Of a stretch of 64,000 nucleotides of DNA, positions 8,190-60,135 are shown piece after piece. The position numbers and the translations under genes were made by a program. This stretch comes from Neoechinorhynchus agilis (lineage: Eukaryota > Animalia > Acanthocephala). The stretch spans positions 2,142,797-2,206,796 of the forward strand of contig CM121342.1 of NCBI GenBank assembly GCA_051530055.1. Direction: 5' to 3'. Positions within the stretch are counted from its first letter, which is position 1, and every line of letters begins with the position of its first letter. The notes under the pieces were generated by a model. The model made no database searches. It had not been told where the DNA came from and was given only the letters and a program-made list of their open reading frames with translations.

Positions 8190-11100
8190 TTATTTAATTA
8201 TAAATTAATTAACAAAAGTTAACTTATATTATTCTCAATTGTCCTTCACCGTCCCCAAGACACTCGCTGCGTTTCCTCGCTGGATAGCCAAGGATATGTT
8301 CTGCACTAGGAACGAGCGAGCCCTCCTGTCATTGGTCGAGTTGATCAGTCGATGCCCCAGTTCGAGAACAAAACTCCTCGCCGCACGTCCGAAAGCTCCT
8401 AAGGTTTCCACTGCGAAGGGGACAAAATGATAAGAATTTGTAAAATCGGCGTATTTTGCAACCTTACGAAGCTCAGCTGCTGATGCGGCTCCCCCAGCCC
8501 CGGAGGATGCATCTCGCCGATTGCTGGCTGCAAGGGAGTCGACGCATGTTGCGTCCCATATTAGACATCTGCCCCTGCTCCAAGGAAAAACGGTAACTCC
8601 ATCCGGCCTACGGCCATCGATCCTGCAGATGTTGCTAGGCTCGAGGATATTCGGAGAGTTAGCCGTTTTCAAAGCGCGGCTCAGCAATGCGTTTATTTCG
8701 GTGTGTCTAGCAAAACGGCCACTTGAGCGTTTACAGGCTAAACCGTGCCTGCCCGAGGGGTCGACTTCCGTCCCGCATCGGCAGGTGTGAGGGATACAAA
8801 CCGGGAGCCCGAGCCTTAGGGACACTGCGATTCTGAGAGCCTCGCCGTCTAATCTCGAACCGATATTTGCTGATGGTACAGCTTTCAACCAGGCGCCGAA
8901 CTCTTTGCAGGAAACTGCAGTTAATCGCGTTCTATCCACGTCGGAGAGCGAGTCAAAAAGTGAGGTGTGAACACGCTCCACTAACGGAATGTCCCACGAT
9001 TTCTGTTTTTCCGGGAGGTCTGGAATCTTGTCGAGGTTAGACAGGGACATCCAAAGATGAAGAGCGGGCTCCAGGCTGATGTCCTCCTCAAAATTATGTT
9101 TCAAAATCAATCTGGAAAGGCGCTTGGACCTACTAAGAGACGATAGAAAGGCTAGAAGCGCAATGGCTGAGCTGGCACGAATACCGATCCCTCCGTAGCT
9201 TGTGGGCAAAGATGCATGGGTCCAGCCAGTGTCGGGGAGCTTAATATTAAGGATCTTGCATAGACCATCCCTTAAAGAACCATCAATCTCTCTCAATTCG
9301 GGCTGACATTGAAAGGAAGGGGTTGACCGCAGTTTATGGAGGATGCGTGGAATGAAGATGCAATTTTTTAAAAGGAAGATAGCATCGTGAGGGAAAAGTT
9401 CAGAGGCCCTTGAACAGATGAGATCAATGGAAGGTCTGATTTTCCTGATATCAGCCTGCATATTCTCCTCGAGAACGCAGCTTCCCAGCAGTTCTAAGCT
9501 GGACTTGGAGATAAGTCGGATATTAGGTGCGGCCTTTTAAAACTCTCTCAAAATTTGTGCACGTTCCTCGTCCCCACAGTTCAAAACCAAAACTTCGCAC
9601 TTGCTTGGGTTCAGTTTGAGGCCAATTTTTTTACATTCTTCTAAAAGAACCGTTATATCTTGTAGGACTTCAGACGGGGAACCTCCTAGAGTAGCGTCAT
9701 CCAGATACCAGGCGTTGAATGGTGATCGAAGAGATTGCGTAAGATTGTTTGTCGTCAGAGCAAAACCTAAAGGCCCCAGAGGGTCCCCTTGCTGCACACC
9801 CGATCGAGACCAGATTAGTTCATTATTATATACGAGCGAGGTGTGAGAGCAATATGCTGACTGAAAGTAGGGGAGAAGCTCTGGAATAGTGTTTCCGACT
9901 GTTGAGATTAAGATGCCTCGATCGATAGTGTTGAAGGCATTTGCGAAATCGCACTTCAGGATTACCTGAACGTCCCTACCAGAATTAATAAAAGAACGCA
10001 GCGTGTGGACTATAGCCTCTGCTCCACAAGGAGAGCAACATCCGAACTGGACGGGCCTAAGGATCTGGCCTGCTTTTTCCGCGACCCTTTTTGACAGAAT
10101 CTTTCCGGTGAGACGGCGAAGGGTAGTTCCGATTGCTATGGGACGAATCCCACCGTCCTTCTTATTAAGGGCACACAGGAAAGCCGAAAACATGAAGTGT
10201 ATTCCAGTGGCATTCGTGTCGCCTCGAGCGATGAGGTTCACTATAGTGGTCAAAGCCTTGGCGACTTTTTCCGCAGCGCAATGCGCTCCCCCCGAGATTA
10301 AGTCCTTTAGATGTTGGGGTCTGAGCCCGTCTAGACCGTGACTTGAACCGCCGGCGAATGAGGAGAGGGCCCTTTTGATTTCGACCACATCTATCGGTTT
10401 GAGATCTATCGGTGAAGGGGAATGTGAGCTAGGAGGTGGTGGTACGGCTGAAGGTGGGTGTTTTTCCCGCAAAGCGTTCAAAGTGGTAATTGTGTCCCCC
10501 GCAAAAGTATCCGCTGATGAGAGAAGGCGCACGGCTCCACGGATGTCGCCGTCGGACAACTTGGCCGATACGCGTTCTCCTAAGCGTCTAGATGAAAAAC
10601 GACGAGGACCTTCAGATTTCGTCGAAAGGGATGTTGGATCCTCGGCAGATTTGAGCACAGCGAGGAAATTATCAGGGAAGTTGACGACTCTGGACTTGAC
10701 AATTGATGTCAAGGATTCCTCTGAGGACTCACCGGCGAATAATACGAGTCGAGGGAAGGCGAACAAACGCATCCAGGATATTGCGCTATTATTACAGACA
10801 CATTCATTTAACAGGTCCGCAAATGCGGAACCTACTTGGTACCGGGCGCCTTTAGGAATTCGTTTGAGGACGTGATTGGGAAGGACACGAAAAAGTTTCA
10901 CAATTAGAGGAAGATTTTGTGAATCAAAGTCAAGTTCACAATTTGGGGGGGAAGAGCTGATATCTTCAGGGGACATGCCCGACCCTTCGCAGCGTGAAGA
11001 ACGGTTCGTGACACTGACTTTTTTTAAGCAGATCTTACACAAACCTGTGGAAACCTTGGAGGCGGACGTAGCATCGATGCCGGAAGAAGTAGGTTCGCAA

Positions 11101-11400
11101 AAAGACATTCTCCAGTACGAGCGTCAGTAAGTTTGTGTGTGTCCTATGGATTGTTTTGGGTTGAATAATTGCTTGTAAGTTGTCTTGGATTATTATTGCT
11201 TGTAAGTTTTTAAATATTCGAGTAAGGTTGTCTTTTTGCTTCAAGAAAGATTGCTGTTTTGCCGACGCCTTTTAAATTCATTGTTTACTGAAATGCCCTT
11301 ATAACCGGCTTATTTGGGAAGTTGCTTTGCACTTAGATACTTTGTCAACCGTTTATAACTCCGCTCGTCTAGCTTCTTAGCTTTAACTAATTCGAGAAAG
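8190..11400 (-). mobile_element. CRE-like non-LTR retrotransposon copy A (single ORF: Zn finger, RT, CCHC, REL endonuclease), near-intact
   Basis: ORFs 9537-11108 and 8235-9461 are in the same frame, separated by one TAA. RT motifs GGIRPIA, DFANAFN, GVQQGDPLGP, WYLDD; C-terminal CRCG..H..C, RH, LEP, RPDG, WDATC, KY, FAVET, QRGNA. About 300 bp of 5' UTR. Confidence 0.88.
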
Positions 11401-19984: not shown

Positions 19985-21750
19985 TACTTCCAATTCAGAT
20001 GATCAACGCTCCTATTCATCGGCGCTGGCATAAATGCTGGTTGCATTGCCCCGCTGCACCGCAATGCTTATTTTTTGCGCCAAGAACGACGTCGATCTTG
20101 GCTCTCCGGTCGCCGCGTTGATTCGTTTCCCCAAGTCCTTCACGAGGGCCAGTGCCGACCCTCCCAAGGCTCCATACGTTTCCACACCGAAGGGGACAAA
20201 ATGGTAATTTCGGATTAGGTCCCTGTATTTTGAGAATTTCCGACCCTCTGCAGCCGTCGCCGCTCCTCCTGGACCTTTTTTTCGGGTGGCTGATGTTGGA
20301 GTTTGCCAACGTGTCCACACACGTTGCATCCCACAACAAACATTTTCCCTCCCGCCAAGGAAATACGGTCACGCCATCAGGGCGTCTTCCATCTAATCTA
20401 CAAAGATTAGTGGATTCTAGAATGTTTTAGAGGGAAAGCGTTTTTAGGGTCCTACTCAGAATGGCATTGATTTCAGCATTCCTTGGAAATCGTCCCGATG
20501 ACGTCTTGCATATGAGACCGTGTCTCCCCCGAAGAGTCCACTATAGTGCCGCAGCGGCAGCGATGATGGATGCAAATCGGTAGGCCAAATCTCAAGGATA
20601 GTGCGATCCTGACGACTGAGTCAGCAAGGAGAGTTCCAAGTTTCCCTACAGGGAGAGGCTACCAGCCGGACCTGAGACACCTCATCCAGAATGTCTTTGA
20701 AAGAGTTGTGAATCTTCTGAACAAGAGGAATGCCCCAAGACGACTGTTTGCACTCATTTGCGGGGAGCTAGTTGATGCCAGTCAATTGATACCATTGAGA
20801 TAATCCCGTGGCAAAGATCCCATCCTTCACTGATATGCTTAAAATGGCATCGACATAGACTTTACTTGCCCGGCAAGAGGAGAGGAAGGCGGGTAAAGCG
20901 AAGTCTGAAGTGGTGCGAACTCCCAAACCACCATAAGCCGTGGGAAAAGTAGCCTGTCGGCAACCTGTGTCAGAAAATTTGACATTCAATATATGTCCCA
21001 GCTGCTTACGAATTACCCCGTCGAGCTCTCCTAACAATTTGTCTTCTCCGAAACATGGAGCTGCTCTTAGCTTATCAAGCAATTTTGGCATATAGAGGCA
21101 ATTCTTGATCAAGAAAAGACCTCATGTGCCGAAAGCTCAGAAGTTCGGCCGCAGAGCAATCTATTTTCGGGATCTGTGCGCGCAAGTCCTTCGCAACATT
21201 CTCAGCAAGAATGCAGCTCCCGAGGAGTGTGAGCTGGTCAAGCGTGATCATACCCAGACCAGGAGCAACTGATTCAAAATCGCTAGAGATTTGAGATCGC
21301 TGGTTTTCAGTTGCGTTCAGGACGAGAAGTTCGAATTTTTTGGGATTTATTTCTATTCCCAAGCGGTCAGCTTCATTCACAATCCTTTGAAGGTCGCCCA
21401 AAACAACACTTGGATCGCCACCGAGTGTGGCATCGTCCAAGTACCAAGCGTTGAAAGGAGGAAACATTGAATGGGCAAGATCATTTACTGCGACGAAGAA
21501 GCCTATCTGGCCGAGTGGATCTCCCTGTAGTACACCACTCTGCGACCAAATTATTTTGTCATTGTACAGCAGTGGCATATGGTTAGCATATGCTCTCCAG
21601 AAATAGGGGTAAGCCTCTGGGACGACATCCTCGATCGTTTTTACCATTATTTCCCTTTTTAAGGTATTGAAAGCATTTTTAAAATCTATTTTCAGAATTG
21701 CTGTTGGCTTTGTTCTTTGGGGATAAATTTTCGCAACCAGCATTAGGCAA
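19985..21750 (-). mobile_element. CRE-like retrotransposon copy C (third subfamily), 5'-truncated and degenerate
   Basis: DFKNAFNTL, GVLQGDPLG, WYLDD, RPDG.T..PW, WDATC, FGVET, ISIAVQRGNA spread over several frames. Confidence 0.82.
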
Positions 21751-21879
21751 CTAGAATCCATGGGTACATTATTTCGTTGCTTCAATATTCCCTCGATATT
21801 GAATCTACTTTTAAAATTCAGCAAAGTGTCCTTTTTGTGGTCATGACCCAAACTTTGTTTGGCGTTACGACCCACAAAA

Positions 21880-22850
21880 TATAATAATAGCACGTTTATT
21901 GGTAAAAAATACAGAATAGGACCCATGTACCTTTGGGTCCTCATAAGCACTCGAGTTCAAAGTTGTTCAAAAGAAAACCTTACCGGTTAGGATGGGAATA
22001 TCCAGCCAAGGGATGCCCGTTCGGGTGGGAATATGTGGTCGGAGGGATGCCCATTCGGGTGGGACCATCCAGTTGGAGAGATGTCCGTGCGGGTGAGAAT
22101 ATGTCCGTTCGTTTGAGAATATGTCCGTTCGTTTGAGAATATCCGTTTGGCTTGGAAGGTCCGTTCTGGTGAGAATTAAAGTTTATTGCTTGCTGGAGCG
22201 CTTATAAGGTTGGTCTTTCCTCAGAATCATTTCAGGTTATGATATCCGAGAAGATTGGGCAGCATGGAAAAAGGAGCGAAGCTATAGGGAGGTGCGATGT
22301 ATAGGAGGTTGAAACGAATTAGGATTACGAGTGTTGTGCTCGTGTGAAAAGGGAGCGATATGTGGAAGAAATTGTGGTGGTAGGGTTGAGAGACGTTTTG
22401 ATTGTTTAATGAAAATAGCATCAAGGCATTCGGTGAGAGGCGGAGAGTAAATTGTGCAAATGGGAATTGCCGAAGCTAGGGAATGTTTTATGATTGAGGT
22501 TAGGGAGGACATGGCCAAGGAAAGGTCATTTGTGGTGTCAGAGTGGAATGTGCGGATATTAGAGTTGAAATTTTTTTATAAAATTTTGGATGTGATGATC
22601 ACGCTTATCCAAGACGGGGAAACGGGAAGATTACAAACGGCGAGGTGGGGCTTAGGTAGTGATAAGTGCAGAAGAGTGGTCAGAGTTCGCGGTGGAGGGA
22701 ATTTAGAGGCGGATGAGTAGGCGTCGTTATTTGTGAACACTTTGCCGAGGTGAGCGTCAAGACGAGTTGGGAAATCAATAAGTTGACGCAACTCGGACAA
22801 GGGTAGAAGAGGAAATAGTTTATTGATGTTAGAAAACAAAAATTTACTTG
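21880..22850 (-). mobile_element. CR1/L2-like LINE, internally deleted copy (end of APE joined to 3' end) with 20-bp tandem repeats in the 3' region
   Basis: LRQLIDFPTRLDAHL..VFTN (APE C-terminus). 22200-22430 matches 57860-58050. 3' stem-loop GGACCCA..TGGGTCC and (TTA)n tail match 58195-58273. gagaatatgtccgttcgttt repeats at about 22095-22145. Confidence 0.7.
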
Positions 22851-24605: not shown

Positions 24606-25090
24606 CGACAATTACTTGACCAAGTCCTGCACCGCGGTACAAAACTACTCGAGTGTCTCGACGCCAAAGGGGACGAAATAAGGATTTCGACTACTGTATT
24701 TGTCTTTTTGCGATCCTCAGCGGCGACAATTACTTGACCAAATCCTGCACCGCGGTAAAAACTACTCGAGTGTCTCGACGCCAAAGGGGACGGAATAAAG
24801 ATTTCGAGTACTGTATTTGTTTTTTTGTGATCCTCAGCGGCGACAATTACTTGACCAAATCCTGCACCGCGGTACAAAACTACTCGAATGTCTCGACGCC
24901 AAAGGGGACGAAATAAGGATTTCGAGTACTGTATTTGTTTTTTTGTGATCCTCAGCGGCGACAATTACTTGACCAAATCCTGCGCCGCGGTAAAAACTAC
25001 TCGAGTGTCTCGACGCCAAAGGGGACGAAATAAGGATTTCGAATCCTGTATTTGCCTTTTTGCGATCCTCAGCGGCGGTTGCTGCCCCCC
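24606..25090 (-). repeat. Four tandem about 118-bp units derived partly from a CRE endonuclease fragment
   Basis: Units start at 24606, 24724, 24841 and 24959. The minus strand translates to GAATAAEDRK..KYSTRNPYFVPFGVETL, matching the REL region of the CRE copies. Confidence 0.8.
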
Positions 25091-29289: not shown

Positions 29290-30668
29290 CTCTTTTCTAA
29301 AAGAAATACCGGGATCTACAGCCGAATATCCACGGATTCTATATCCTTAGGATAAATCGCCCTGAAACACACGCCATTTTCGGTTAATTAACTCTTGAAA
29401 ATTGACTCGAAAGTGACGACATGATCTTTTCTAAAGAAATACCGGGATCTACGGCCGAATACCTACGAATTCTTTATCCTTAGGATAAATCGCCCTCAAC
29501 CACACACCATTTCCGGTTATTTAAATCTTGAAAATTGACTCGAAAGTGACGACATGATCTTTTCTAAAAGAAATACCGGGATTTACAGCCGAATATCTAC
29601 GGATTCTATATCTTTAGGATAAATGCCCTCAAACACACCATTTTCGGTTGTTCAACGCTTGAAAATTGACTCGAAAGTGACGACATGATCTTTTCTAAAG
29701 AAATACCGGGATCTACGGCCGAATACCTACGAATTCTTTATCCTTAGGATAAATCGCCTCAACCACACACCATTTCCGGTTATTTAAATCTTGAAAATTG
29801 ACTCGAAAGTGACGACATGATCTTTTCTAAAAGAAATACCGGGATTTACAGCCGAATATCTACGGATTCTATATCTTTAGGATAAATTGCCCTCAAACAC
29901 ACCATTTTCGGTTGTTCAACGCTTGAAAATTGACTCGAAAGTGACGACATGATCTTTTCTAAAGAAATACCGGGATCTACGGCCGAATACCTACGAATTC
30001 TTTATCCTTAGGATAAATCGTCCTCAACCACACACCATTTCCGGTTATTTAAATCTTGAAAATTGACTCGAAAGTGACGACATGATCTTTTCTAAAAGAA
30101 ATACCGGGATTTACAGCCGAATATCTACGGATTCTATATCTTTAGGATAAATTGCCCTCAAACACACCATTTTCGGTTGTTCAACGCTTGAAAATTGACT
30201 CGAAAGTGACGACATGATCTTTTCTAAAAGAAATACCGGGACCTACGACTTGAAAATTGACTCGAAAGTGACACATGATCTTTTCTAAAAATAGGATACC
30301 CGAATATCTACGGATTCTTTATCCTTAGGATAAATCGCCCTCAACCACACACCATTTCCGGTTATTTAAATCTTGAAAATTGACTCGAAAGTGACGACAT
30401 GATCTTTTCTAAAAGAAATACCGGGATTTACAGCCGAATATCTACGGATTCTATATCTTTAGGATAAATTGCCCTCAAACACACCATTTTCGGTTATTCA
30501 ACGCTTGAAAATTGACTCGAAAGTGACGACATGATCTTTTCTAAAAGAAATACCGGGACCTACTACCGAATATCTACGGATTCTTTATCCTTAGGACAAA
30601 TCGCCCTTAAATACACAGCATTTCCGGTTATTTAACTCTTGAAAATTGACTCGAAAGTGACGACATGA
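29290..30668. repeat. Satellite array, about 132-bp monomer, about 10.5 copies, alternating A/B variants (about 265-bp dimer)
   Basis: gtgacgacatgatc recurs at 29413, 29546, 29677, 29809, 29941, 30074, 30206, (30268 partial), 30391, 30523 and 30657. Confidence 0.95.
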
Positions 30669-38459: not shown

Positions 38460-40064
38460 TTGTTTTGTAAGCAATCGCCCATATTGTATATGCCATAAGA
38501 AAAAAAACTTCTAAAGTTTACATTAACATAAAGTCAATTATTTTGATTTGGCTTACATAAATGTAAGGAACAATACTGAGTGATGAATTAAGGAAATTAT
38601 AACTAGATTAAAAAGTTTAAACGCGTTCTAAGTGTCGATGCGTATAGAGGAGAAATCGAACCAGGATAGACATTCAAAAGCGCTTTAAAATTTCAAAACT
38701 TGACCGATGCTGTCATTTTAGAGATTCGAACAATTGCGTTGATAATAAATCTAAGAATGCATTACGGTACGATTTCGGTGTAGAGCATTTTAGAATTGGT
38801 AGATATTGCAAATTTCATGATCTCTGTTTTCAAACTCTTATTTACTGCTTTCCCTTCCTGAAATATCTATACAAATAAACGTGGATATTTGAGAATAATT
38901 AAAATAAATTATTTTTCTAATATTATGTTCCTAAATAATTTTCTTGGATATCTGATAGCTTAATACTTAATATAGAAAAACTTATTTTTGTGTTATTCCT
39001 TCAACTTAAGCTTTCGCAATTTTCTAACAAAATAAAATTTTAAATATTATAGCATCCAAAGCGACTAAAAAGTGTGCTTATTACGTCATGCGAGAAAAGT
39101 GATCCATCAAGAACTTACATTAATCAAACAGCCTCTTTTAAATACTGAAGAGAAGTGCATAAATTTTGTGAGACAACGGTCATCTGTATCTCAAACTGTG
39201 ATTTGGAAATTAATGACATTAATCTTAAAGATACTTCAAGAATAAATTGTAAAACCAATCTAATCTCACATCGTTTTTAACACTAAATGCCATTATATGC
39301 GTTCGTTGATAACCATCAACAAATGTCACGAGGTCAAAGTAGTAAAGCGTTTTTCGAAGCACTGGAAGGCTATAAGCAACCAATGCTTCACGCTGGAGGA
39401 CACGTACCACAGGATCCTCTTTATAAAGTTTTTGATCTAGAGGACATATGTGAAGGTGTTGATAATATGGATGTGGCGAAGGAAGCTATCAAAAGGAGAA
39501 AATATTTATGACTATAATCCCAAGGCTCAAAGAAAATTTCATTGTCAAAATAATGAGAGAAGATCTAGGAAATACAACTCACAGTGACTTGGTAAAATAT
39601 ATTATGGGAAATGAAAAACGACGATTGGACATTTTAAACCTTGACCAAGATCTGTTAATAAGAATTAGTTTGGAATGGTTTCTTTGGTGAATATTCTTAA
39701 GAAAGATTTGAATGTATTCTAAAATATACAAGGATATAAGATTACAAGTAATGCAGAAAAACGGGGAAAGTCTATTTGGTTGTATGTTGAAGTATTGGGA
39801 AAGGATGGATTATCAGTCTCAAATCTTGAAGTGTTGTAGTCAGCAGGCTAGCTATTTTAAAAATCTAGAGAAGATTATGGCCAGCTAAGATGACGAATTT
39901 GGTTACACGGATTAACGCGGGAAATGACAAAGGCAGATATCAAGTGATTTTAGATCAATCAAACAATTTACTTGGCTTTTCAATGAACGAAGATGGAAAC
40001 TATCGTGATTTAAGAGTGCTATTTTTTATTCTATTAATTGCTCAACAACCAAACAGCAAGATTT
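38460..40064 (+). repeat. 1.6-kb AT-rich segment R; other copies at 42604-44225 (-) and 60265-61945 (+, interrupted and truncated)
   Basis: The same ORFs MPLYAFVDNHQQ.. and MVRVLQREALV.. occur in all three copies (MTIIPRLKENF.. in two), with near-identical flanking DNA. Confidence 0.9.
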
Positions 40065-42100: not shown

Positions 42101-44285
42101 TCTCCGGATGAATACTTCGAAATTAATCTTATACAAAGACAAGCTTTGAAAATCGAAAAAAGCTTTGTGAATTGGCTGAATAGGATCTAGTTAAGAATAT
42201 ACGATATCCACCCAAAACGCCTTAAAATTATCAGGACTAGTCTGAGCAACCCTAACCTACCTCCTTGTATCCAATTTGGTTTCCGACATGGCGCTGGTAG
42301 TTGATATGCAGGTAATCGATACCATCGTGAACCTGCATATTTACATCAGTGGGTCTTAGTTGTTCTCTATTTGGAAAACTTGGGCTATTTCCAGCCTTGC
42401 TTTTTATTTAAGAGGTCTCCCGGAACATAAACCTCTCTTCCTCGAAGCATTTTTCAAGCATATCAACTCTATACCTTCTACCTGGGCTTGTGAGCTTAGG
42501 AATTCATGCTTACAAAGGTTTCACAAATGAATTTACTAACTATTGTTCTACTATCCTATCTGTATCGCAGTTCCTTATTTCTCGTGGCGTTTAATGCTGA
42601 ATTAAATCTTGTTGTTGTTTGGTTGTTGAGCAATTAATAGAATAAAAAATAGCACTCTTAAATCACGATAGTTTCCATCTTCGTTCATTGAAAAGCCAAG
42701 TAAATTGTTTGATTGATCTAAAATCACTTGATATCTGCCTTTGTCATTTCCCGCGTTAATCCGTGTAACCAAATTCGTCATCTTAGCTGGCCATAATCTT
42801 CTCTAGATTTTTAAAATAGCTAGCCTGCTGACTGCAACACTTCAAGATTTGAGACTGATAATCCATCCTTTCCCAATACTTCAACATACAACCAAATAGA
42901 CTTTCCCCGTTTTTCTGCATTACTTGTAATCTTATATCCTTGTATATTTTAGAATACATTCAAATCTTTCTTAAGAATATTCACCAAAGAAACCATTCCA
43001 AACTAATTCTTATTAACAGATCTTGGTCAAGGTTTAAAATGTCCAATCGTCGTTTTTCATTTCCCATAATATATTTTACCAAGTCATTGTTAGTTGTATT
43101 TCCTAGATCTTCTCTCATTATTTTGACAATGAAATTTTCTTTGAGCCTTGGGATTATAGTCATAAATATTTTCTCCTTTTGATAGCTTCCTTCGCCACAT
43201 CCATATTATCAACACCTTCACATATATTTTATTCTTCACCTACCACTTCTTGCTGGTCCTCTAGATCAAAAACTTTATAAAGAGGATCCTGTGGTACGTG
43301 TCCTCCAGCGTGAAGCATTGGTTGCTTATAGCCTTCCAGTGCTTCGAAAAACGCTTTACTACTTTGACCTCGTGACATTTGTTGATGGTTATCAACGAAC
43401 GCATATAATGGCATTTAGTGTTAAAAACGATGTGAGATTAGATTGGTTTTACAATTTATTCTTGAAGTATCTTTAAGATTAATGTCATTAATTTCCAAAT
43501 CACAGTTTGAGATACAGATGACCGTTGTCTCACAAAATTTATGCACTTCTCTTCAGTATTTAAAAGAGGCTGTTTGATTAATGTAAGTTCTTGATGGATC
43601 ACTTTTCTCGCATGACGTAATAAGCACACTTTTTAGTCGCTTTGGATGCTATAATATTTAAAATTTTATTTTGTTAGAAAATTGCGAAAGCTTAAGTTGA
43701 AGGAATAACACAAAAATAAGTTTTTCTATATTAAGTATTAAGCTATCAGATATCCAAGAAAATTATTTAGGAACATAATATTAGAAAAATAATTTATTTT
43801 AATTATTCTCAAATATCCACGTTTATTTGTATAGATATTTCAGGAAGGGAAAGCAGTAAATAAGAGTTTGAAAACAGAGATCATGAAATTTGCAATATCT
43901 ACTAATTCTAAAATGCTCTACACCGAAATCGTACCTTAATGCATTCTTAGATTTATTATCAACGCAATTGTTCGAATCTCTAAAATGACAACATCGGTCA
44001 AGTTTTGAAATTTTAAAGCGCTTTTAAATGTCTATCCTGGTTCGATTTCTCCTCTATACGCATCGACACTTAGAACGCGTTTAAACTTTTTAATCTAGTT
44101 ATAATTTCCTTAATTCATCGCTCAGTGTTGTTCCTTACATTTATGTAAGCCAAATCAAAATAATTGACTTTATGTTAATGTAAACTTTAGAAGTTTTTTT
44201 TCTTATGGCATATACAATATGGGCGATATATATAAAAATATCCAAGATTCTTTGTTCCAATCGTACATTCATTGAATATTTGGTT

Positions 44286-47247
44286 ACTTTTCTTTACATT
44301 CACCACCTCCCACCAAATTCCAGCTTTTGTCCTTCCTCGACCGTCGCCATCACGCTGGCAGCATTGCCCCGTTGTACTGCCAGCGAGATATTTTGTCGAA
44401 GAAATATGCCTGCTCTTGAGTCTCCGGTTGCCTCTCTCAATTTCTTCGAGAGATCCTTGAGCAGAGAGAGTGCCGAGCTGCCGAGCGCTCCATACGTCTC
44501 TACCCCAAAGGGGACAAAATAGTGAGCCCTCGATAGCTGCATATATTTTCGTACCTTCCTCCCTTCCGCTGCACTGGCGGCACCACCGGCGATTTCGAGG
44601 GAGTAGGGGATGTTGCTGGCTGCGAGGGTGTCCACACACGTGGCGTCCCAGAGAAGGCATTTGCCCTCCCGCCACGGGAAGACCGAAATTCCATCGGACC
44701 TACGGCCGTCTAGTCTGCAGAGGTGGGCGGGTTCCAGGATGTTCGGGAAGTTCGCCGTTCTCAACGCCCGAGAAATTACGTTATTGATTTCAGAATGGCG
44801 TGAAAACCTTCCTGCTGACCTTCTGCAGACGAGACCGTGTCGCCCGAAAGCATCAACCAAAGACCCACATCGACAGCGATGGGGCGTGCATATCGGGAGA
44901 CCGAGTCTTGAGGATACTGCGATCCTCGTCACCTCGTCAGTAAGAAGAGTTCCCACAGATGCCAGAGGAACAGCCTCCAACCACGCCCCAGATTCTCGTG
45001 TTGAAACTGCCAACAGTCTAGCTCGGACGACCCCATCGCGAGAACCTGAAAGAAGAGAGCTGTGAGCTCTCGCGACAAGAGGTCCGTCCCAGATCGACTG
45101 TCTGAGGCCATTCACGGGAACTTGGTTAGCGCCTGTCTGCTGGCACCATTCCTCAACCGCCACCACGAAATCCCGGTCAAGACAAAACTTTTCTTTCAAA
45201 ATGTTCTTCGAGACTGGTAGGCTCCCCTCAAACGATCCAAGAAAGGCCGGCAAAGCAAGGTCGACTAGTGCCCGAATTACCAATCCCCCAGATGACACAG
45301 GCAAAGAAGCTTGTCGCCACGCCTCATCTGAGAGCTGGACATTTAAAATACGCTCGAGGCAAGCCCTCACCTTATTGTCCAGCTTTGCCAATCCTTCTTT
45401 GTGTTTGAAAAATGTTGCTGTGCGAACCTTGTACAATAATTTGGGGATGAAGAGCGCGTTCTTTATGAGAAACAAGGCTTCATGAGCAGAGAGAGCGCAC
45501 ACCCTATCGCACAGCAACGAAAGTTTCGGTATGATATGGCCGATCTCATCTTCCACATTTGAATCGAAGACACAACTGCCCAAGAGGCTGAGTTGTTCCC
45601 GAGTCACGAGTTTCAGACCTGGAGCTACGGCCTCGAACCCAGCCATTAGTTCTTTGACTTTAGCGGCGTCTCCAATATTCAGTACAAGGAGCTCACATTT
45701 TCCAGCATTAAGCTCAATGCCCATCTTCGAGGTCTCCCTAATCAGCGTCTCCAAATCGCGCAGTACAACGGAGGGATCACCTCCGAGCGTAGCGTCATCC
45801 AAGTACCAGGCGTTGAAGCTGGAATGGAGAGAATGCGCTATTGGGTTTACTGTTAGGGAGAATCCGATTGGACCGAGGGGATCTCCTTGCTGCACTCCTC
45901 TTTCGGACCAAATGAGGTGGTCTTCGAAAAGCAAAGGAATCGCCGTCCCGTAGGCATTGAGAAAATACTGGAAGGCTTCTGGTGCGTGATCCCTAATTGC
46001 GCGGAACATGCTTTCTCTATTAAGAGAGTTAAAGGCGTTCCGAAAATCGCACTTAAGAATCACGCACGGCGCTGAGCTACTCGTAGCAAAGTTTCGGAGC
46101 GAGTGGACGATAGCTTCCGCCCCGCAGGATGTGCAGCAGCCCAGTTGGAGTGGACGAAGTTGCTGCCCGGTTTTCTCTGTAATACGTTTGCAGAGAATTT
46201 TTCCTGCAAGTCGGCGTATCGTCGAAGATACGGCGATGGGACGAATCCCACCTTCTTTTTTTGTGAGAGCACATAATGATGCTCCGAAAAATAGGTCTTT
46301 TGCAACGGGGTTCAGGTCCTCTCCAGTCAGGCGGTCGACTATTCGAGAAAGCGCACTTTCTAGAGAGAGCTGCTTCACCAGTTGAAAAGGACATCATGTC
46401 CTTTAAGTGCTGAGGCCTTAGTCCGTCAAGCCCGTGACCCGAACCATTTGCAAAAGTTGAGATGGCCTTTTTCATCTCTGAAATTTGAGTGGGCGTCCTG
46501 TCCTGAATGGGAGGAGATGGAATTTCAAAGCTTCCGCTACTACATGGGTGCTTCGACCGGAGTATTTGTAGCGTCTCGCTGTCTCCTTTTGCGAAACTGT
46601 CGGAGGATGACAATAACCGAACAGCCCCCCGAACATCCCCGTCCGCAAGCTTCGAAGAGACACGCTCAGTCAGTGATCGCTTTGAAAAACGGCAGCGATA
46701 CTCTTCCTTCGTGCGTCCCTTAGAAACCTCGCGGAGATTCCTTTCAAAATTTTTAAATATTTGTTCAAAGGAATCTAACCTTTCCTTGATTGTTGATGTC
46801 AAAGACACCCGAGAATCACCGCTGGTGCAGAGGACTAAGCGCGGGAAAGCGAAGAGCCGTGTCCATGAAGGCGCACAGTTCGTTTGCAGGCAATCATTGA
46901 GCAATCCCGTAAATGCTTTGGCGACCAGATATCGCGCGCCTTTGGGGATCCGTTTCAGGACGTTCCTGGGCAGAAACCGCACGATATCAGGTATCGAAAT
47001 AGAATCAGTGGTGATCTGAGGGGTCTCAGGCACGAACGGTTCGGTTAATTGTGGTGGAGAACCAGACCCACTACAGCGGAGATCTCGGGGACCATGGACA
47101 AACAAAACCCCCATATTTGTTAATTTAAAAAACTTACCGCAAACCGGACACAAACCAGTAGAGACGCGTGGGAGCCCGGCAGCGTTGGTCTTCTCAGATT
47201 GCACGTGATCGATAAGTAGCTCGTTCAAATTATCTGCGTCACCAGCG
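44286..47247 (-). mobile_element. CRE-like retrotransposon copy D, 5'-truncated, one frameshift
   Basis: ORFs 46077-47255 and 44300-46378 join through a frameshift in a (CT)n run near 46365. All RT and REL motifs are present but RPDG is changed to RSDG. AACCA occurs at both ends (44281-85, 47248-52). Confidence 0.9.
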
Positions 47248-47944
47248 TGGTTCATGAAATCCTTTAACCAGAAAATCTACAAACTCAACGATGACAAACG
47301 ATGCGTATCATTTGTCAGGTTATTACTCTCACCGGGAAATAAGTCGTTTTAATTACCAATAAAGATAGACTGCTTTTGTTTCGAGGAAACCAACCTTGAA
47401 TGTAAAAGATAAGGGCTTTACATCAAGCGCAAATGTTAGCTCTAATGCATTCCTTTCCACCGTTTTAGAGAGCGAGGCGCAGCATGAATTTGTATAACGC
47501 GAAAAGGTTTAAAGTTGCCCACGTTCATCTTATTATCAAACAAATTTATTCAGCATAAAGTATGTCGCGTAATCATTAAATCGAAGCGGCTTTGATTGAG
47601 CTAAAGATGCGGCAAAGGAAGGAGGTGTAATTATTGTGGTTAGGAGACAAATTGTTCTTTATAGAAGCCACTATTCTCTGCATGTTCTACAAGTCTTTAG
47701 ACATGCAATGCCGGATATACTCCACTTTTAGCATTGTTTCGTCGTTTGTCTTAGTGGTGGTTCGAAGAATGCATGGGAGTCAGGGATATATTTTCTAGTT
47801 TGGGAAAGGAAAACACACACAATGAGTAACAGTGAGCATCGGTCCTTCTTAATCGTTTATTTCCGTGATACACACAATACGGCGTCGTCTTTATTTTCGC
47901 ATCCGCTAATGGACATCAGATTTTAGTCTTCTAGGTAGGAATGG

Positions 47945-50896: not shown

Positions 50897-51598
50897 ATGC
50901 ACCCAGAAAACGCAGCGAACAGTGCAAGCAGTAAACAGACCAATGGGAGAGCAGAAACGAAATCCTCACTAGCTACGGAACCCAATGTTGGCACCGATCT
51001 AATTCCTGTAACGTGGATAAACGAACCAATGGACTTATCGTCAACATCCGATTTATGGCCCATTGAAGCAATAAACGACGACCAGTACAGTTATCGGAAT
51101 ATCCTACAGATTCCAACCATTTTCCCAGGCACCATCGATACGACTCAATTGTCCTCTGCGATCCCACTCTACGATCCAATTATTCCGCCAATACCAGACT
51201 CATTGGAGGAGATTCTCGAAACGCAGCCTCGTACGCATAGTTACGATGATCCTGTAACGTGGATAAACGAACCAATTGACTTATCGTCAATTTCCGATTT
51301 ATGGCCCATGGAAGCAATAAACGACGGCCAGTACAATTATCGGAATATCCTACAGATTCCAACCATTTTTCTAGGCACCGTGAATACGACTCAATTGTCC
51401 TCTGCGATCCCACTCTACGATCCAATTATTCTACCAATACCAGACTCATTGGAGGAGATTCTCGAAGCACAGCTTCGTACGCACAGTTGCGATGATTTGT
51501 TTCAAATCCGGGAACTTTCACGGATAACTGGATTGAGCGAGAATATAATTTCGCTCTGGCTTCATAATAGAAGATCAAGGATCACCCGGCAGTGGTGA
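50897..51598 (+). CDS. Divergent homeodomain protein (233 aa) with an 82-aa internal duplication and two PxDLS motifs
   Basis: C-terminus SLEEILEAQL..IRELSRITGLSENIISLWLHNRRSR fits homeodomain positions L16, E17, L34, L40, I45, W48, N51, R52, R53. Repeat starts at 51005 and 51251; PMDLS and PIDLS. Confidence 0.72.
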   Translation: MHPENAANSASSKQTNGRAETKSSLATEPNVGTDLIPVTWINEPMDLSSTSDLWPIEAINDDQYSYRNILQIPTIFPGTIDTTQLSSAIPLYDPIIPPIPDSLEEILETQPRTHSYDDPVTWINEPIDLSSISDLWPMEAINDGQYNYRNILQIPTIFLGTVNTTQLSSAIPLYDPIILPIPDSLEEILEAQLRTHSCDDLFQIRELSRITGLSENIISLWLHNRRSRITRQW

Positions 51599-52358
51599 TT
51601 TCGAGATATTTCCAGAAATTTACTTAGCCTCATTATACGGACCATATATTGTGAATGAGGCTTTAGTTCTTAGTAACTGGCGTTATATTGTTAGCACAAT
51701 TTCTTAGCTAGTTTTACAATTGATCTTGTGCTCAGATCAAGCTAAAATAAATTTATTAACTTAGTTTAAAAATAACTCCATTATTTATCACATAAATGCA
51801 ATTTTAGCATCATGATATTCACGTTCTTCAGAGCGCTTTGATGACAAATTCGAAGCCAACCTTTCCTTGAAGTGGGTAAGATATTCTTAAAATATGAAGA
51901 ACTCTTTCTTACAAAAATGACTGGTAAGGACCATCGCAGAGTCGTTGAAAGTTGCAGTGTATAAAAGTTAATGGAGGGCATAGAAATAAAGTGCGCGCAT
52001 TGGAATTACGTTGTCGGAAAAAATATTTGTTTAAAAATTTCGTTAAAAATTTATGCGCCATGAAATGTTCGCAATTTGTACGAAGATGAATAAAGGGGCA
52101 ATGAACTATCGAGCCACTTTTAAATGGATTACATCAAGGGTTCTTGAACAGTATTTTAGAAGAAATATAAGACCATATATTTTGTTCGGATTGAGTGACT
52201 GTTGTAAAGCCAGATTTTTTTAGCAGTTGAATTAATGCCATAAAATTTTTTACAGATCGCGATGACATTTCATATTGAAATTTTTGACATTTGCAAGGTT
52301 CAACTGCAGAATGCATTTTAATTTAATGAAATTAATCTGGTACAGCACGGTTATGCAC

Positions 52359-52431
52359 GGGGCTGTAGCTCAATTGGTAGAGCGCTCGCTTCGCATGCGA
52401 GAGGCACCGGGATCGACACCCGGCAGCTCCA
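52359..52431 (+). tRNA. tRNA-Ala (anticodon CGC)
   Basis: Cloverleaf; acceptor GGGGCTG/CAGCTCC with G3:U70; anticodon arm CTCGC-TTCGCAT-GCGAG; discriminator A. Confidence 0.92.
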
Positions 52432-52646
52432 AATCGGACGAGCCTATCAGAGATAAACGACTCAGTACTAATGCGTGTTCGGCGCCACCCAAGAGTTCCT
52501 CCGAATTTTCCAAAAAACAACCTAGATTTTGCTCGCTCACCCAACTAAATGGGCTTCCAACGCTGAAATGGGAGGTTTCCGATGAAATGGTTTTAATCCA
52601 CATCTGCGGACTGCAATATTTGAGCGCATAATGCATTTTAACTTAC

Positions 52647-55533
52647 AAGCACACACTTTCTTTAAGCATTTCTCTATTCGGGGTAATCATTCCAGCGCTT
52701 TTTAGGTCGTCGTGGCCTTCGAACTCCTGCTATTTCTATACTTGAGACCATTCGCTCTAGTTCGTCGGATCTTGTCCTTTTAATCGCTCATTTAATCTTG
52801 ATTGCTGCTCGCAAACCAAGTCGCCTATTTTGTTCACATGAGCGGATCGTCGCACATGATTTGTTTTCGATCTTTTCCAACTGAGTAACCCCTGCCATCC
52901 AGCGGAGCATGCGTATTTCCGTCGTTTCGAGGCGCTTTCCACGTTTCGGCTCCGTAAAGTGCGTCTTATCGCGACTTTGTAAATATGTCCCTTGAGCGCT
53001 AATGGAACTCGACTGTTGCAAATTGCGCTGGTTAGGCTCTTCCATTTCGACCACCACCCCAAATAGCGAAAGTGATCTTGACGGTTTAGTACTCTTCTGT
53101 GCTGCCGATTAACAGCATCTAAACCCACATAAACTTTCTTTTCTTTGCAAATTCTCATGCCATTGTCTTCGAGCGACCCTCTCCATTTCTCGAGATCCTC
53201 GTTGAGTTCTTTGCAGGAGAAGCCACACAGAACGATGTCGTCGGCGAACATCATGTTCCAAGGAGGCCCCTGGCTAACGCTGCTGGTTATCTCGTCGAGT
53301 ACAAGTACAAACAAATACGGACTGCGAGCAGATCCTTGGTACAAGCCAACCTTATTTAGGAAAGCATCAGTGTTCCCAATAGGCGTTCGGGTGTATGTTT
53401 TGCTTCCTTCTTACACATCCTTGATTATCTGTACATACCTTTCTGAGCCCAGCTTTTTCCTCCGGCATGACCGAATCTGTCGTCTCGGCACTGTATCAAA
53501 CTCCATTTCGAGATCCACAAAAACTCAATGGAGATTTTCTGCCAGATTTATTATCGAACGGAAAATGGGTGTTTTATTTGTTTATTGCTTCAAATTTTCG
53601 ACGCCTTGCGTCTTCGCCAGGAAGCTTTTCTTCGGTTGTCTGAAAAGGAATCAGAGGAGGGCAACGCTGTCCGTCAGAGATTTTCTGCTTTTCGTAGTAT
53701 TTTTCGACTAGCTGCCGCATTGCGAAAATAGCCCCTTCCCGAATAGTTGTCTCGCTTCTTAATCTCTTAACAATAATCTTTTCGAAAATCTTCAGAGTGT
53801 GGCGTATTAGTTTGATCCCTCGGTAATTGGTGCACGATTGGATATCTCCTTTCTGCTTGAAAATCGAGATAAGAATGCTTCGTCTATACTCGTACGGTGT
53901 ATTCGTCCCGTCCGCATAATTTGTCGAAAGAGCTTCTTCAATGGTTGGATACCCGTTTCGCTCAACATTCTCCAAACTTCCACTGGAATCTCGTCCGGTC
54001 CTCTTACCATTCTTCATATTGCGCAACGCCGACTTGACTTCTACACCTGAGATTTCCGTCACCAATCCTTCGTTGGGAGTTTCCTCTGTCGATGTTTTCT
54101 TGCAATTCTCAGTATTATGAAGCTCACTTAAATATTCTTTCCAACGCACTTTGATGTCATCATCCTCGCTCAGCACAATTCCTTCCCTGTTTTTTATCAG
54201 CCGTACCTTCGTGATGTCTTTGGATTTCTCGTCCTTAATCTTCGCGACTTTCACCATAAAGGGCAAATCATTGTTATTGTGCATTTTAGAATAAAATAAC
54301 CAATCCGCTTCACTTTTTGAGATCGACGCTGCTTTTTTTTGCTGATGTGTACCTGTGCCTAGTTTGCTCGCAATTATCCGATATCATCTGCCTTCTGGCT
54401 TCCCTTTTGGATTTCCGCATTCCACTACCACCACCACCATGTTTCCTTTCCATGTTTTTATCTTACCTGAGGTTACGTTCCTTCCAGCTTTGCGGAGGAT
54501 GTTCGCAGTTTCGTTCCACCAATCATTTGTGTCCTCAATGACTTGGACCATATTTTGAGATACAGCATTTTTAAACTTGTTCCCAGCGATCTGTCTTAGT
54601 CTCCACCACTTGATTTTCCGCGGCATCGTATATTTTTATCTTCTTCTGACCATCATCTGGAGATCAATGCACAAAGGCTGATGGTCGGTGGAGAATGTTT
54701 CCCCCAATATGATCTTTGTGTTTCGGACTTCGTTTAAAGAATAAAGTCAATCTGTGTTCGTCTTCCCCCGGAGGTATAAATTGCAAGATGTCGATCTTCC
54801 TTATCAAAAAGGTGTACGCGATCCTTAGTTTGTTCGCAAGCGCGAAGCCTTCGTCATTTTGTGTCCCGATACTCCTTCCGCCGTGGACATCTTCGCAAGC
54901 TTGATTGTTCTGCCTGATATGACCCCTTGAAGTCGCCACAAACCACGAGTTCATCGTCCTTACCAGTTCTTATGGCTTCATCAAGTCCACTCCAGAATTC
55001 ATCTTTCTCTTGTTGAGGGAAGGTAGCAAGAGATAATGGTCAAGCCCTGAGCAACAAGATCCATTCTTGTCGGCATTATTCTACCAGTGAACCTCTTAAT
55101 TTCCAACGCTGTATCTTTGTATTTCTCATCTAATGCAATTTTCCACCCCGTTTCTACCATTACATGATCCACTATAATATAATTTAAAACCTTCCCCTAA
55201 TTCTAGAGCCTTCGATCCTCTCCATCGTAGTTCCTGCAAGCATAGAATTGCAATTAGTTTCTTTTTTCATCATGCTCACTACTTCTATTGACTTGCCTGT
55301 CATCGTACCCACATTAAATGATCCTCCCTCGCACAATAGTTTTTCGTTCATTTGTTAACTTTTTCACAAATGCCGAGCGGATCTAGTCAAATTGTGATTT
55401 TTGATGTGATCTTCCATGTAATGTTGCTTGGGTTTGAAGCAAGTTTCACGGCCGGATGCCCTTCCTGTCGCTAACCCTAACCATTTATCCGAGCTTGGAA
55501 CCGGCCGACATCAGGTCTCCCCGATGGCTGGAT
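52647..55533 (-). mobile_element. RTE-clade non-LTR retrotransposon, full-length but degenerate, with 15-bp TSD
   Basis: APE start (VGTMTGKS..ILCLQEL), NYRGIKLIRH, SPYLFVLVLD, MMFADDIVL. TSD TGCATTTTAACTTAC at 52632-52646 and 55534-55548. Confidence 0.9.
55466..55533 (-). ncRNA. Twister-like ribozyme (3' cleavage-product portion) at the RTE 5' end
   Basis: ATCCA GCC [ATCGGG GAGA CCTGAT] GTCG GCCGG TTCC AAGC TCGG ATAAA TGGTT AGGG; matches the twister core GCCGG-UCCC-AAGC-CCGG-AUAAA..AGGG as recalled. Confidence 0.75.
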
Positions 55534-55544
55534 TGCATTTTAAC

Positions 55545-55783
55545 TTACGTTGTATTTCATAAATAAATATTTTGATTTCAGAAATATATATTTCACGTTA
55601 AAATAATAAAAAATAATTTAAACAAGCATTTGGAACTACCAGTAGAGACTTGAACAACTACTACTGAGCATTTTAAAGCCGAGTCTATGCAGTAAAAAAT
55701 ATTGTTTAAATTATTTTTTTATTTTTTAACGTAAAATATATATTCTAGAAATCAAAATATTTATTCATGAAATACGCTGTAAT
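55545..55783. mobile_element. AT-rich MITE-like inverted repeat, about 80-bp arms
   Basis: gtatttcataaataaatattttgatttc..aatttaaacaa mirrors ttgtttaaatt..gaaatcaaaatatttattcatgaaatac. Confidence 0.7.
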
Positions 55784-55815: not shown

Positions 55816-55888
55816 GGGGCTGTAGCTCAGCTGGTAGAGCGCTCGCTTTGCATGCGAGAGGCACCGGGATCGACACCCGGCAGCTCCA
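55816..55888 (+). tRNA. tRNA-Ala (anticodon TGC)
   Basis: Same cloverleaf as 52359; loop TTTGCAT; differs only at the anticodon and two D-loop positions. Confidence 0.92.
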
Positions 55889-58780: not shown

Positions 58781-59674
58781 CTTGTGTCAACGTCGAGATT
58801 GGAACTTGCCAAGAACCAAACAATGGAAAGGCACGACTTTTACAACTTTTGCAACACAAATGCTAAACCAAATCTTGAGCATCCGAATTCATGTGAAAAC
58901 CAGAACCAAATATCGAGATCAAATCTTACCTCTTGACCGTTCCGATATTGTCGTTGGCCAGGCACATTCAATTACAATGAAACACCTGCCAATATCCGGA
59001 GTATCGACTCCAATCACGGACGCGCTTTGCCGCAAAGTTCGTCCTCCTTTTGTTGAACCAAATATAAAAAATCACAGTCACAGTCGCATCCTAGGGCCCT
59101 CTTCAAAGAGGTTCAACGCCCTAAATCCTCCTTAGAATATTCTTTACTTGGTCAGTTATTAACCAAGGGGTATTCACACACTTCAATATTCTCGAGCCTT
59201 CTATGACGATTCAACGTAGTCCTCGTTTCTGAATCGAAATGTGTCCTATCTCGACCATATCGACTAATGATATTGTATTGCAAATCCAACATTTGATTAC
59301 ACGGTTCTCAAACTCGAGATTTATTCAATACTTCGGTGTCATTTTTAGAAGTTCGCAACACTGCTGAAACGTCCACGACTCTATCATGGACTATTGCCTC
59401 ATCGAGACGTCAAAGAATTAAATTATTAAAATCCGATTATAACAGAAGCTCAGGTCCATAGCAAATATAAAAAGGCGATACATCCTATCCTGAATTCTCG
59501 TCCCAGACCACCTTGCACCTTTTCTCTTTTTTGAACGTGAATGATTTCTCGGCAACTATATAGTTGTGTTATTTGAAGCTCGAGAAAAGACTTTTTCTTT
59601 TGCGAAAAAGTAATTTGCCCAGATCAACAAATCCGCGCATCGTTTCCGATTTTTTCTTGACCTCTATGAGTTAA

Positions 59675-60135
59675 TCGCCGTATTCCTCGTTAAATTTCAG
59701 GCTTCCCAATTCATCAATTAAACTTATCCAACCATCTCTATCTTCTTCGTCAACAGTTCCCGCACTTCGCTTTCGAATGTTCCTTGATCTCTGTGATTTA
59801 TGTTCGTAATCTTCGTCATTTTTCAGCCTTCATGATTCATCGATTAAACTGCCCCAAACACCTCTATCTACTTCATCTGCAATTCCGGTACTTCGTCTTC
59901 GAATGTTCCTTGATAACTTTGAGTTATCGCCGTTTTCTTCGTCATCTTTCTGCTTTCCCAATTCATCAATTAAACTTCCCGAACCATCTCTATCTACTTC
60001 ATCTGCAGTTCCGGCGCTTCGTGTTCGAATTTTTCTTGATATCTTTGAGTTATCGCCGTTTTCTTAAATTTCAGCTTTCCCATTTCATCAGTTGAACTTT
60101 CTTATTAACCGAACCATCTCTATCATTGTCAACTG
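59675..60135 (-). repeat. About 3.5 tandem 126-bp units encoding a 42-aa repeat, decayed
   Basis: ENGDNSKISRKIRTRSAGTADEVDRDGSGSLIDELGKQKDDE and variants; period 126 bp (59925 vs 60051); internal stop and a frameshift. Confidence 0.8.

Follow-up and report, generated by a model that had tools for sequence, protein, structure and literature searches.

The closest described counterpart of the element treated here is Perere-3/SR3 of Schistosoma mansoni, which carries T-variant twister ribozymes at its 5' end (Liu et al. 2021, Nucleic Acids Research, PMC8501958). Absence of the P1 helix is the signature of the T-variants, which cleave in vitro as well as in reporter constructs, and the target-site duplication (TSD) lies next to the cleavage site, supplying the 5' strand of P1 (PMC8501958). 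For the RTE superfamily, de la Peña et al. (2020, Cells, PMC7761336) also state that the elements conserve truncated but competent twisters at their 5' ends, and they propose that these ribozymes release the 5' end from upstream transcripts by processing. This proposal takes a single sentence, which cites work 'in preparation' and gives no data, hosts or sequences, and it fits the element described below. A full paper on truncated twisters of the RTE superfamily was not found in the literature searched, and a 2026 study of Perere-3/SR3-like elements across Metazoa leaves ribozymes unmentioned (PMC13155389). Here an insertion of this kind is described from a stretch of 64,000 nucleotides (the window, numbered from its first base) of the acanthocephalan Neoechinorhynchus agilis (contig CM121342.1, positions 2,142,797 to 2,206,796). 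It is an old and dead RTE-like retroelement on the minus strand, and its 5' end was very probably set by self-cleavage of a twister ribozyme before reverse transcription.

Two further groups of ribozymes are relevant for comparison. Hepatitis delta virus (HDV)-like ribozymes occupy the 5' termini of R2, some RTE elements, baggins and L1Tc (Eickbush 2010, Ruminski 2011 and Sanchez-Luque 2011, as cited in PMC6765202 and PMC7936874). The HDV-headed elements resemble the present case in being promoter-less elements without long terminal repeats (non-LTR) which are co-transcribed and whose RNA is freed by a self-cleaving ribozyme at the 5' end. The HDV-like ribozyme cuts at its own 5' edge and is inherited as a whole, whereas twister cuts after the 5' strand of P1 and one strand would be lost in every cycle. 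The second group are the twisters of type P1 (Rfam RF03160; Osa-1-4 of O. sativa), with which the window sequence shares the core GCC...GCCGGUYCCAAGCYCGGAUAAA...AGGG and the architecture of P2, P4, T1 and T2. Unlike these, it stays under the gathering score, has no P1, carries U for G in the GAGGG motif and has a mismatch in P2. Absence of P1 is a feature in common with the engineered 'mini-twister', in which P1 proved dispensable and a single nucleotide was cut off at a near wild-type rate (PMC5408937); a retroelement can therefore keep a ribozyme whose P1 strand is uninheritable. In a high-throughput survey an imperfect P1 likewise left cleavage undiminished (PMC11662667).

An RTE-like insertion and its twister-like head

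The element comprises 2,887 bp (52647-55533 on the minus strand) between two exact copies of a 15-bp TSD, gtaagttaaaatgca in minus-strand reading, on which the repeat finder agrees (family D2; Table 1). Its head reads AA (55534-55533) TCCA GCC ATCGGG-GAGA-CCTGAT GTCG G CCGG TTCCAAGC TCGG ATAAA TGGT TAGGG TTAG down to 55471, where the hairpin ATCGGGGAGACCTGAT, with 6 bp and a GNRA loop, represents P3. Within the window the 22-mer core GCCGGTTCCAAGCTCGGATAAA is unique, and 100 shuffles gave no instance of it with three mismatches tolerated. A search of the whole window with Rfam at the gathering score yielded two tRNA-Ala genes and no twister. In E-value mode on 241 nt, the twister-P1 model RF03160 matched 55539-55471 (-) with 27.6 bits (E=3.9e-4), in an alignment which lacks P1 and predicts the scissile bond to lie between C55535 and A55534. 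Taken alone, this match and the unique 22-mer are suggestive only, and it is the comparative evidence which is decisive. A lineage covariance model (R1) was built from 38 related sequences with the window left out. Applied to both strands of the 64 kb it gave 47.2 bits (E=1.1e-11) at 55534-55434 (-), with model position 1 falling on 55534, and the runner-up match reached 13.7 bits.

The individual parts of the fold can be followed along the head. The AA at 55534-55533 aligns to the UAA of the twister model, and on the 3' side of the scissile bond stands the conserved A. P4, formed by CCGG and UCGG with one G.U pair, closes the loop L4 UUCCAAGC, for which the conserved twister sequence is GUCCCAAGC. 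The pseudoknot T1 (CCC of L4 with GGG of L1) consists in the window of the pairs U.G, C-G and C-G, and T2 (GC of L2 with GC of L4) of G-C and C-G. In P2, UCCA and UGGU form three of four pairs besides a U.U mismatch. The head of the element is a predicted twister core without the 5' strand of P1, corresponding to a P1-less ('mini') twister of type P1. The original prediction had delimited the element by the same duplication, of which exact copies are present at both ends, and had quoted a head string which is present letter for letter. Its match to the P4/L4/T1 core of twister is borne out by the score of model R1 and by covarying relatives, and what it stated on Perere-3, a twister at the 5' end and a TSD adjoining the cleavage site, is correct (PMC8501958). 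It had also expected a twister covariance-model match on the minus strand, and one is found at the place it named, strong with R1 but below the curated threshold of Rfam.

The body of the element is a ruin of one reading frame. Elements of the RTE clade are about 3.2 kb long and have very short untranslated regions (UTRs), one open reading frame (ORF) about 1000 amino acids long with an N-terminal apurinic/apyrimidinic endonuclease (APE) and a reverse transcriptase (RT), and at the 3' end a short simple-repeat tail without a long poly(A). In the window the 5' UTR measures about 117 nt. By tblastn with APE and RT containing proteins of ~990-1000 amino acids, a match over residues ~61-924 was obtained, all in the same orientation and interrupted by at least six changes of frame, in addition to which the ORF carries several stops and internal deletions. 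Three-frame translation showed the usual RTE motifs spread across all three frames. The stitched ORF pieces match the Pfam domain RVT_1 (E=4.9e-19) and, weakly and below the cut-off, Exo_endo_phos_2 (E=6.9e-5). The stitched translation found RTE-like proteins with 35-39% identity to this degenerate query, mostly on contigs of ~3.0-3.5 kb from ENA/TARA marine metagenomes and Logan assemblies, with one in the catfish Hemibagrus guttatus; an S. mansoni protein was absent among the 47 protein matches. The predicted assignment to RTE rests on this architecture and on these protein matches.

Read by eye, the sequence closing the element on the 3' side (...ACCCCGAATAGAGAAATGCTTAAAGAAAGTGTGTGCTT) is homologous to that of intact relatives such as locus L007 (...GACCCCGAATAGGGATAAAGCTGGGAAGAAGAAG), and its tail looks like a decayed simple repeat. 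The window element terminates in ...AAAGAAAGTGTGTGCTT, relatives in (GAA)n or (AAG)n, a likeness judged by eye as well. Both termini of the element are complete and its interior is shortened, to 2.89 kb as compared to the contigs of ~3.0-3.5 kb bearing intact relatives. Further copies in the 64-kb window were found neither by motif nor by covariance model nor by tblastn. Outside the ribozyme the element is clearly under no selection, and the insertion is probably functionless at its present locus.

Table 1. Features of the insertion, in window coordinates
Feature	Position	Strand	Basis
Element-5' TSD copy, gtaagttaaaatgca	55534-55548	-	sequence reading and repeat finder
Twister remnant without 5' P1 strand, ~64 nt	55471-55534	-	Rfam twister-P1, lineage model R1, covariation of relatives
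L1, AA	55534-55533	-	
P2 5' strand, UCCA	55532-55529	-	
L2, GCC	55528-55526	-	
P3 hairpin, AUCGGG-GAGA-CCUGAU	55525-55510	-	
Linker, GUCG+G	55509-55505	-	
P4 5' strand, CCGG	55504-55501	-	
L4, UUCCAAGC	55500-55493	-	
P4 3' strand, UCGG	55492-55489	-	
AUAAA	55488-55484	-	
P2 3' strand, UGGU	55483-55480	-	
UAGGG	55479-55475	-	
Former P1 3' strand, UUAG	55474-55471	-	
5' UTR hairpin, CAGGA-AGGGCA-UCCGG	55452-55467	-	alignment A1, columns 89-107
Degenerate single RTE ORF	52793-55417	-	three-frame translation; tblastn to P0001/P0004/P0005; Pfam
Likely ATG of ORF	55417	-	
APE region	~55324-54730	-	
RT region	~54001-52955	-	
C-terminal remnant of ORF	to ~52793	-	
Authentic element 3' end, ...ACCCCGAATAGAGAAATGCTTAAAGAAAGTGTGTGCTT	52647-52700	-	read by eye, without alignment statistic
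Element-3' TSD copy, 15 bp	52632-52646	-	sequence reading and repeat finder

Relatives, junctions and covariation

Seven relative loci (L001-L007) were retrieved, and the same ribozyme is present at the 5' end of the closest of them. The twister-P1 model scored 52.2 bits in L001, 49.0 in L007, 40.6 in L004, which is cut by the contig end, and 45.4 in the catfish locus L005, there ~250 bp upstream of the ORF. These intact relatives, with 40.6-52.2 bits, likewise remain under the RF03160 gathering score of 67.2 because P1 is absent. Homology continues into the 5' UTR behind the ribozyme, where the window reads GGGTTAGCGACAGGAAGGGCATCCGGCCGTGAAAC and L004 GGGTTGGCGGCAGGAAGGGCATCCGGCCATAAAAAC, and similarly in L006, L007 and L001. 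The window sequence groups with L001, L004-L007 and the 'AACCAAGCC' metagenome family, not with Perere-3/SR3, and its head is assigned to a sister group of the Perere-3 type.

The likeness to Perere-3 extends to the layout. In both cases an APE and RT encoding RTE element begins with a type-P1 twister and starts at the AA of L1, with the 5' strand of P1 coming from the flank only, and in both the order is P2-GCC-P3-P4/L4-AUAAA-P2-GAGGG-UUNG. They differ in P2, which is CUCC/GGAG in Perere-3, UCCA/UGGU in the window and ACCA, CCAA or UCUA on the 5' side in close relatives. Where the window has AUAAA, Perere-3 has mostly GUAAA, and the window adds a short GNRA-capped P3 and a 4-nt linker. Downstream, the window has the hairpin CAGGA-AGGGCA-UCCGG in its 5' UTR, whereas the Perere-3-like metagenome copies L054 and L060 carry other sequence. 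Finally, the window copy is degenerate and known from sequence alone, while the T-variants of Perere-3 have been shown to cleave.

Metagenomes were scanned with a pattern taken from the 3' half of twister, which yielded 120 more loci (L008-L127). The junction count was made on 52 independent insertions, drawn from the metagenomes and the relatives, with fully paired P2 (4/4), the preceding bases being unconstrained. Of the two bases before P2, the one at -2 is A in 42 and the one at -1 in 41 of these 52 related insertions. The base 5' of the scissile bond (-3) is random (G13/C14/A10/T15), and sequences farther upstream are unrelated. In single copies TSDs abut the AA, as in L031 (CCTCGGTAATGT) and in L091 (AATGAAGACTT), the latter with 3 nt of microhomology. 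The inherited sequence in this lineage of twister-headed RTEs thus begins at the predicted twister cleavage site. Pairing of the flank with the remaining strand of P1 is poor. In the window AAUG faces UUAG and forms one of four pairs, and in the related insertions flank-derived P1 is near chance, with a mean of 1.92 of four pairs as compared to 1.77 in shuffled flanks; the 5' strand of P1 is therefore neither inherited nor regenerated by target choice. A downstream strand which might replace the lost one (UUGN with CCAA or CGUAA) was considered and rejected: its variation looks like CpG decay and support by RNAalifold is absent.

Covariation was examined in an alignment (A1) of the window and 39 relatives, in which pairs were counted with both pseudoknots. 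Paired cells amounted to 90.8%, as compared to 83.6% in shuffles and 25-41% when partners were slid. P2 is paired to 98.1% across the 40 sequences with compensatory changes at all four pairs, the variants being CCAA/UUGG, CCAC/GUGG, UCUA/UAGA, CUCC/GGAG and ACCA/UGGU. Compensatory changes were also seen at eight of the eleven pairs of P3. P4 is paired to 98.8% in the relatives, and one of its pairs changes from UA to GC in seven sequences. RNAalifold recovered P2, P3 and P4 de novo. T1 and T2 are compatible with pairing to 96.7% and 100%, with one-sided G.U changes only; as there are no double changes, the two pseudoknots are compatible with the alignment and unproven by covariation.

A second conserved piece, the hairpin CAGGA-AGGGCA-UCCGG, follows directly 3' of the ribozyme. 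Its loop is highly conserved, and it is found in L001, in L004-L007 and in most metagenome copies, while it is missing in four rows of the alignment (L054, L060, L076 and L101). Pair 92-104 covaries, being GC in 33, AU in four and GU in two sequences and never unpaired, and pair 96-103 is AU in 36 of 40. RNAalifold pairs GGGU of T1 with a downstream AUCC instead, a possible alternative fold. We tentatively consider that twister-headed RTEs are broadly distributed and old and that the hairpin, together with the conserved former 3' strand of P1 (UUG or UUAG), might be a functional second module, which at present seems a doubtful proposition. Such a module could serve in translation initiation, in recognition by the reverse transcriptase, or as a fold which hides the GGG of T1 after cleavage. 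To our knowledge, a two-part head of ribozyme and hairpin has no earlier description.

Some further observations were made on the relatives. L002 (1-300) and L003 (1-260) show two tandem, divergent twister-like heads on one RTE relative. Their junction gives a weak type-P3 twister in Rfam (23.3 bits, E=0.62), with AAGU instead of AAGC in L4; in this alignment the 3' half would come from the upstream unit, and cleavage would take place where the second unit starts. In the catfish H. guttatus a second twister-P1 match of 37 bits (L005, 622-681, minus strand) lies in reverse orientation 2 kb from the RTE-linked one; it presumably heads a separate element, either truncated or short.

Origin of the 5' end

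According to the mechanism suggested by these data, transcription of a source copy would have included host sequence lying upstream. Folded by means of P2, P3, P4, T1 and T2, the twister would cut between the last nucleotide of the flank and the first A of the AA in L1. The released RNA, starting with 5'-AAUCCAGCC, would undergo target-primed reverse transcription into a staggered nick, leaving a duplication of 14-15 bp. Because the cut lies 3' of the 5' strand of P1, this strand and the nucleotide N-1 would never be inherited. Each new copy would carry a random flank before the AA and would depend on P1-independent cleavage. We infer here that cleavage rather than a transcription start fixed the 5' end, and that the ribozyme of the family was active.

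A number of findings weigh against this scheme. The Rfam score of the window copy, 27.6 bits, is far under the gathering score of 67.2. A55534 can be assigned to the end of the TSD or to the start of the element, an ambiguity of one nucleotide by which the 5' junction is fixed to +/-1 nt. Only one copy is present in the window, so that the homogeneity of the junctions rests on related families and not on the family of the window element itself. The outer pair of P2 is a U.U mismatch (U55532/U55480) where relatives have A or C first in P2. UAGGG (55479-55475) is the sole exception among the 40 aligned sequences, every other one having GAGGG; as GAGGG was part of the search pattern, the metagenome loci are bound to share it. 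The Rfam twister-P1 consensus also carries a conserved G at this place. A sheared A-G pair has been described between P2 and T1 (PMC5408937), and by our own assignment the first G of GAGGG would be a partner in it. Two changes of C to U, U55499 in T1 and U55492 in P4, leave only G.U wobble pairs, and between the short GNRA-capped P3 and P4 there is a linker of 4 nt. Finally, sequence alone cannot separate a 5'-OH end generated by cleavage from a transcription start at the AA.

The changes in the ribozyme core, together with the ruined ORF, are best read as neutral decay, and the cleavage which is recorded happened in the transcript of the source element, not necessarily in an RNA of the window locus. 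The self-cleavage before reverse transcription put forward in the original prediction is well supported to within one base by the 52 junctions and by position 1 of model R1 at 55534. The 5' end coincides with the predicted scissile bond, and the claimed 'single-base resolution' has to be relaxed to +/-1 nt for the shared A. The insertion probably does record ribozyme processing, as claimed, with the qualification that the window copy itself is a mutated fossil. The new host lineage which the prediction proposed is plausible. The uniformity of 5' junctions was seen in the 52 insertions, with TSDs abutting the AA, in related families rather than in the element's own.

Whether 'fossil' is the proper word depends on the present state of the ribozyme, which might still be catalytically competent and trim read-through transcripts at the locus, in full agreement with a 5' end made by cleavage. 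Natural twisters tolerated imperfect P1, P2, L1, P4 and L4 in high-throughput tests (PMC11662667), two of the four changes in the window keep wobble pairs, and three of the four pairs of P2 remain. This competence is nonetheless unlikely in view of a mismatched P2, U for G in GAGGG and a linker between P3 and P4, all combined in one ribozyme. Furthermore, the nested twister fold has a calculated energy of -11.5 kcal/mol as compared to -19.3 for a competing fold, pseudoknots being outside this calculation, and the rest of the element is clearly without selection.

A more fundamental objection would be that the 5' end stems from an internal promoter starting at the AA, or from reverse transcriptase stopping at the structured head, with the twister kept for translation initiation or RNA stability. 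The flank offers essentially no P1 and the N-1 base is random, as such a start would allow, the conserved hairpin and 5' UTR behind the ribozyme suggest that the head may have extra roles, and translation of a downstream reporter required cleavage in the work on Perere-3 (Liu 2021, PMC8501958). Yet conservation of a full catalytic core, its helices covarying, runs precisely to the scissile bond and ends there. Loss of P1 leaves twisters able to cut off one nucleotide almost as fast as the wild type (PMC5408937), the T-variants of Perere-3 cleave at this very place in vitro and in vivo (PMC8501958), and RTE elements have been described as promoter-less and co-transcribed (PMC6765202). We therefore regard this origin of the 5' end as improbable as compared to self-cleavage by the twister. 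That the twister likeness arose by chance in an ordinary RTE 5' UTR and that the 15-bp repeat is a coincidence, for which one might quote the lack of an Rfam match at the gathering score and an E-value of 3.9e-4 computed on 241 nt only, is effectively refuted by the independent R1 match over the window (E=1.1e-11), the absence of the 22-mer from shuffles, the same ribozyme with covarying helices at the same position in the closest RTE relatives, and the exact TSD at both ends of a region homologous to full-length relatives.

Surroundings, spread and significance

The insertion is bracketed by two tRNA-Ala genes on the opposite strand, at 52359-52431 (+) with anticodon CGC and at 55816-55888 (+) with anticodon UGC. 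They are of eukaryote type, are 96% identical when 3 nt on either side are counted, and would be ~480 bp apart if the element were removed. An imperfect third copy of the TSD region, GCAGAATGCATTTTAATTTA at 52306-52325 as compared to GCATAATGCATTTTAACTTA at 52626-52645, precedes the first tRNA-Ala gene by 34 nt and may be due to chance or be a piece of a duplicated tRNA upstream region.

The tRNA genes share the window with other non-LTR elements (long interspersed nuclear elements, LINEs), satellites and a PIAS-like ORF. These contents clearly point to a eukaryote, which is probably an invertebrate of a sparsely sampled group. ORFs of non-LTR elements with RVT_1 occur at 8235-11108 (-), 44300-47255 (-) and 21075-21950 (-); the best named relatives of the LINE ORF at 44300-46378 are lepidopteran, with only 41-46% identity, which speaks against a lepidopteran as host. 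Satellite-like tandem arrays at 29291-30668, 24606-25077, 51004-51496 and 59656-60099 have periods of ~133, 117, 246 and 126 bp, respectively. A near-perfect inverted repeat (39101-40059 and 42612-43600) has arms of at least 960 nt which are 99-100% complementary and ~2.5 kb apart; it may extend past the searched region, gave two weak spurious matches to model R1, and may represent either a foldback element or a palindrome of the assembly. The unbroken ORF of 567 amino acids at 44-1747 (+) carries PINIT and MIZ/SP-RING domains as in a PIAS-like SUMO ligase. The best database match to this protein, at 38% identity, has no name, and an aphid match is 26% identical. Exact look-ups of three ORFs from the window gave no match.

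Most of the twister matches in metagenomes (JGI contigs Ga0056*, Ga0126*, Ga0209* and others) are located on short elements of ~270-310 bp, which consist of the head, ~200 nt and a (TG)n-type tail and have TSDs abutting the AA. RTE coding sequence follows the head in only 15 of the 89 metagenome matches which have 700 nt or more of sequence downstream. The same head with RTE ORFs is present in L010, L040 and L116, whereas L047 and L108 are seemingly internally deleted. The short twister-headed elements, hundreds in number and ~290 bp long, appear to be deletion derivatives resembling short interspersed nuclear elements (SINEs) which have retained the ribozyme.

A flatworm element with this arrangement has been published before, and the arrangement is widespread; the window adds one more example of it rather than a new mechanism. 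While it is useful for studies on minimal twisters, it opens no new question. For annotation, twister allows RTE 5' ends to be called to the base, and the Rfam twister-P1 threshold misses all of these copies. What the window adds is one well-resolved case in which the RNA of a promoter-less RTE would be freed from host read-through by a ribozyme that loses a strand with every jump. The comparative data extend twister-headed RTEs beyond Schistosoma to marine metagenomes, a catfish and the host of the window, and indicate that the natural working form in these elements would be a twister which lacks P1 and in which a random nucleotide precedes the cut. Short non-autonomous elements have also received a copy of the head, and this wider distribution of twister-headed RTEs together with their SINE-like derivatives is the most useful by-product of the analysis.

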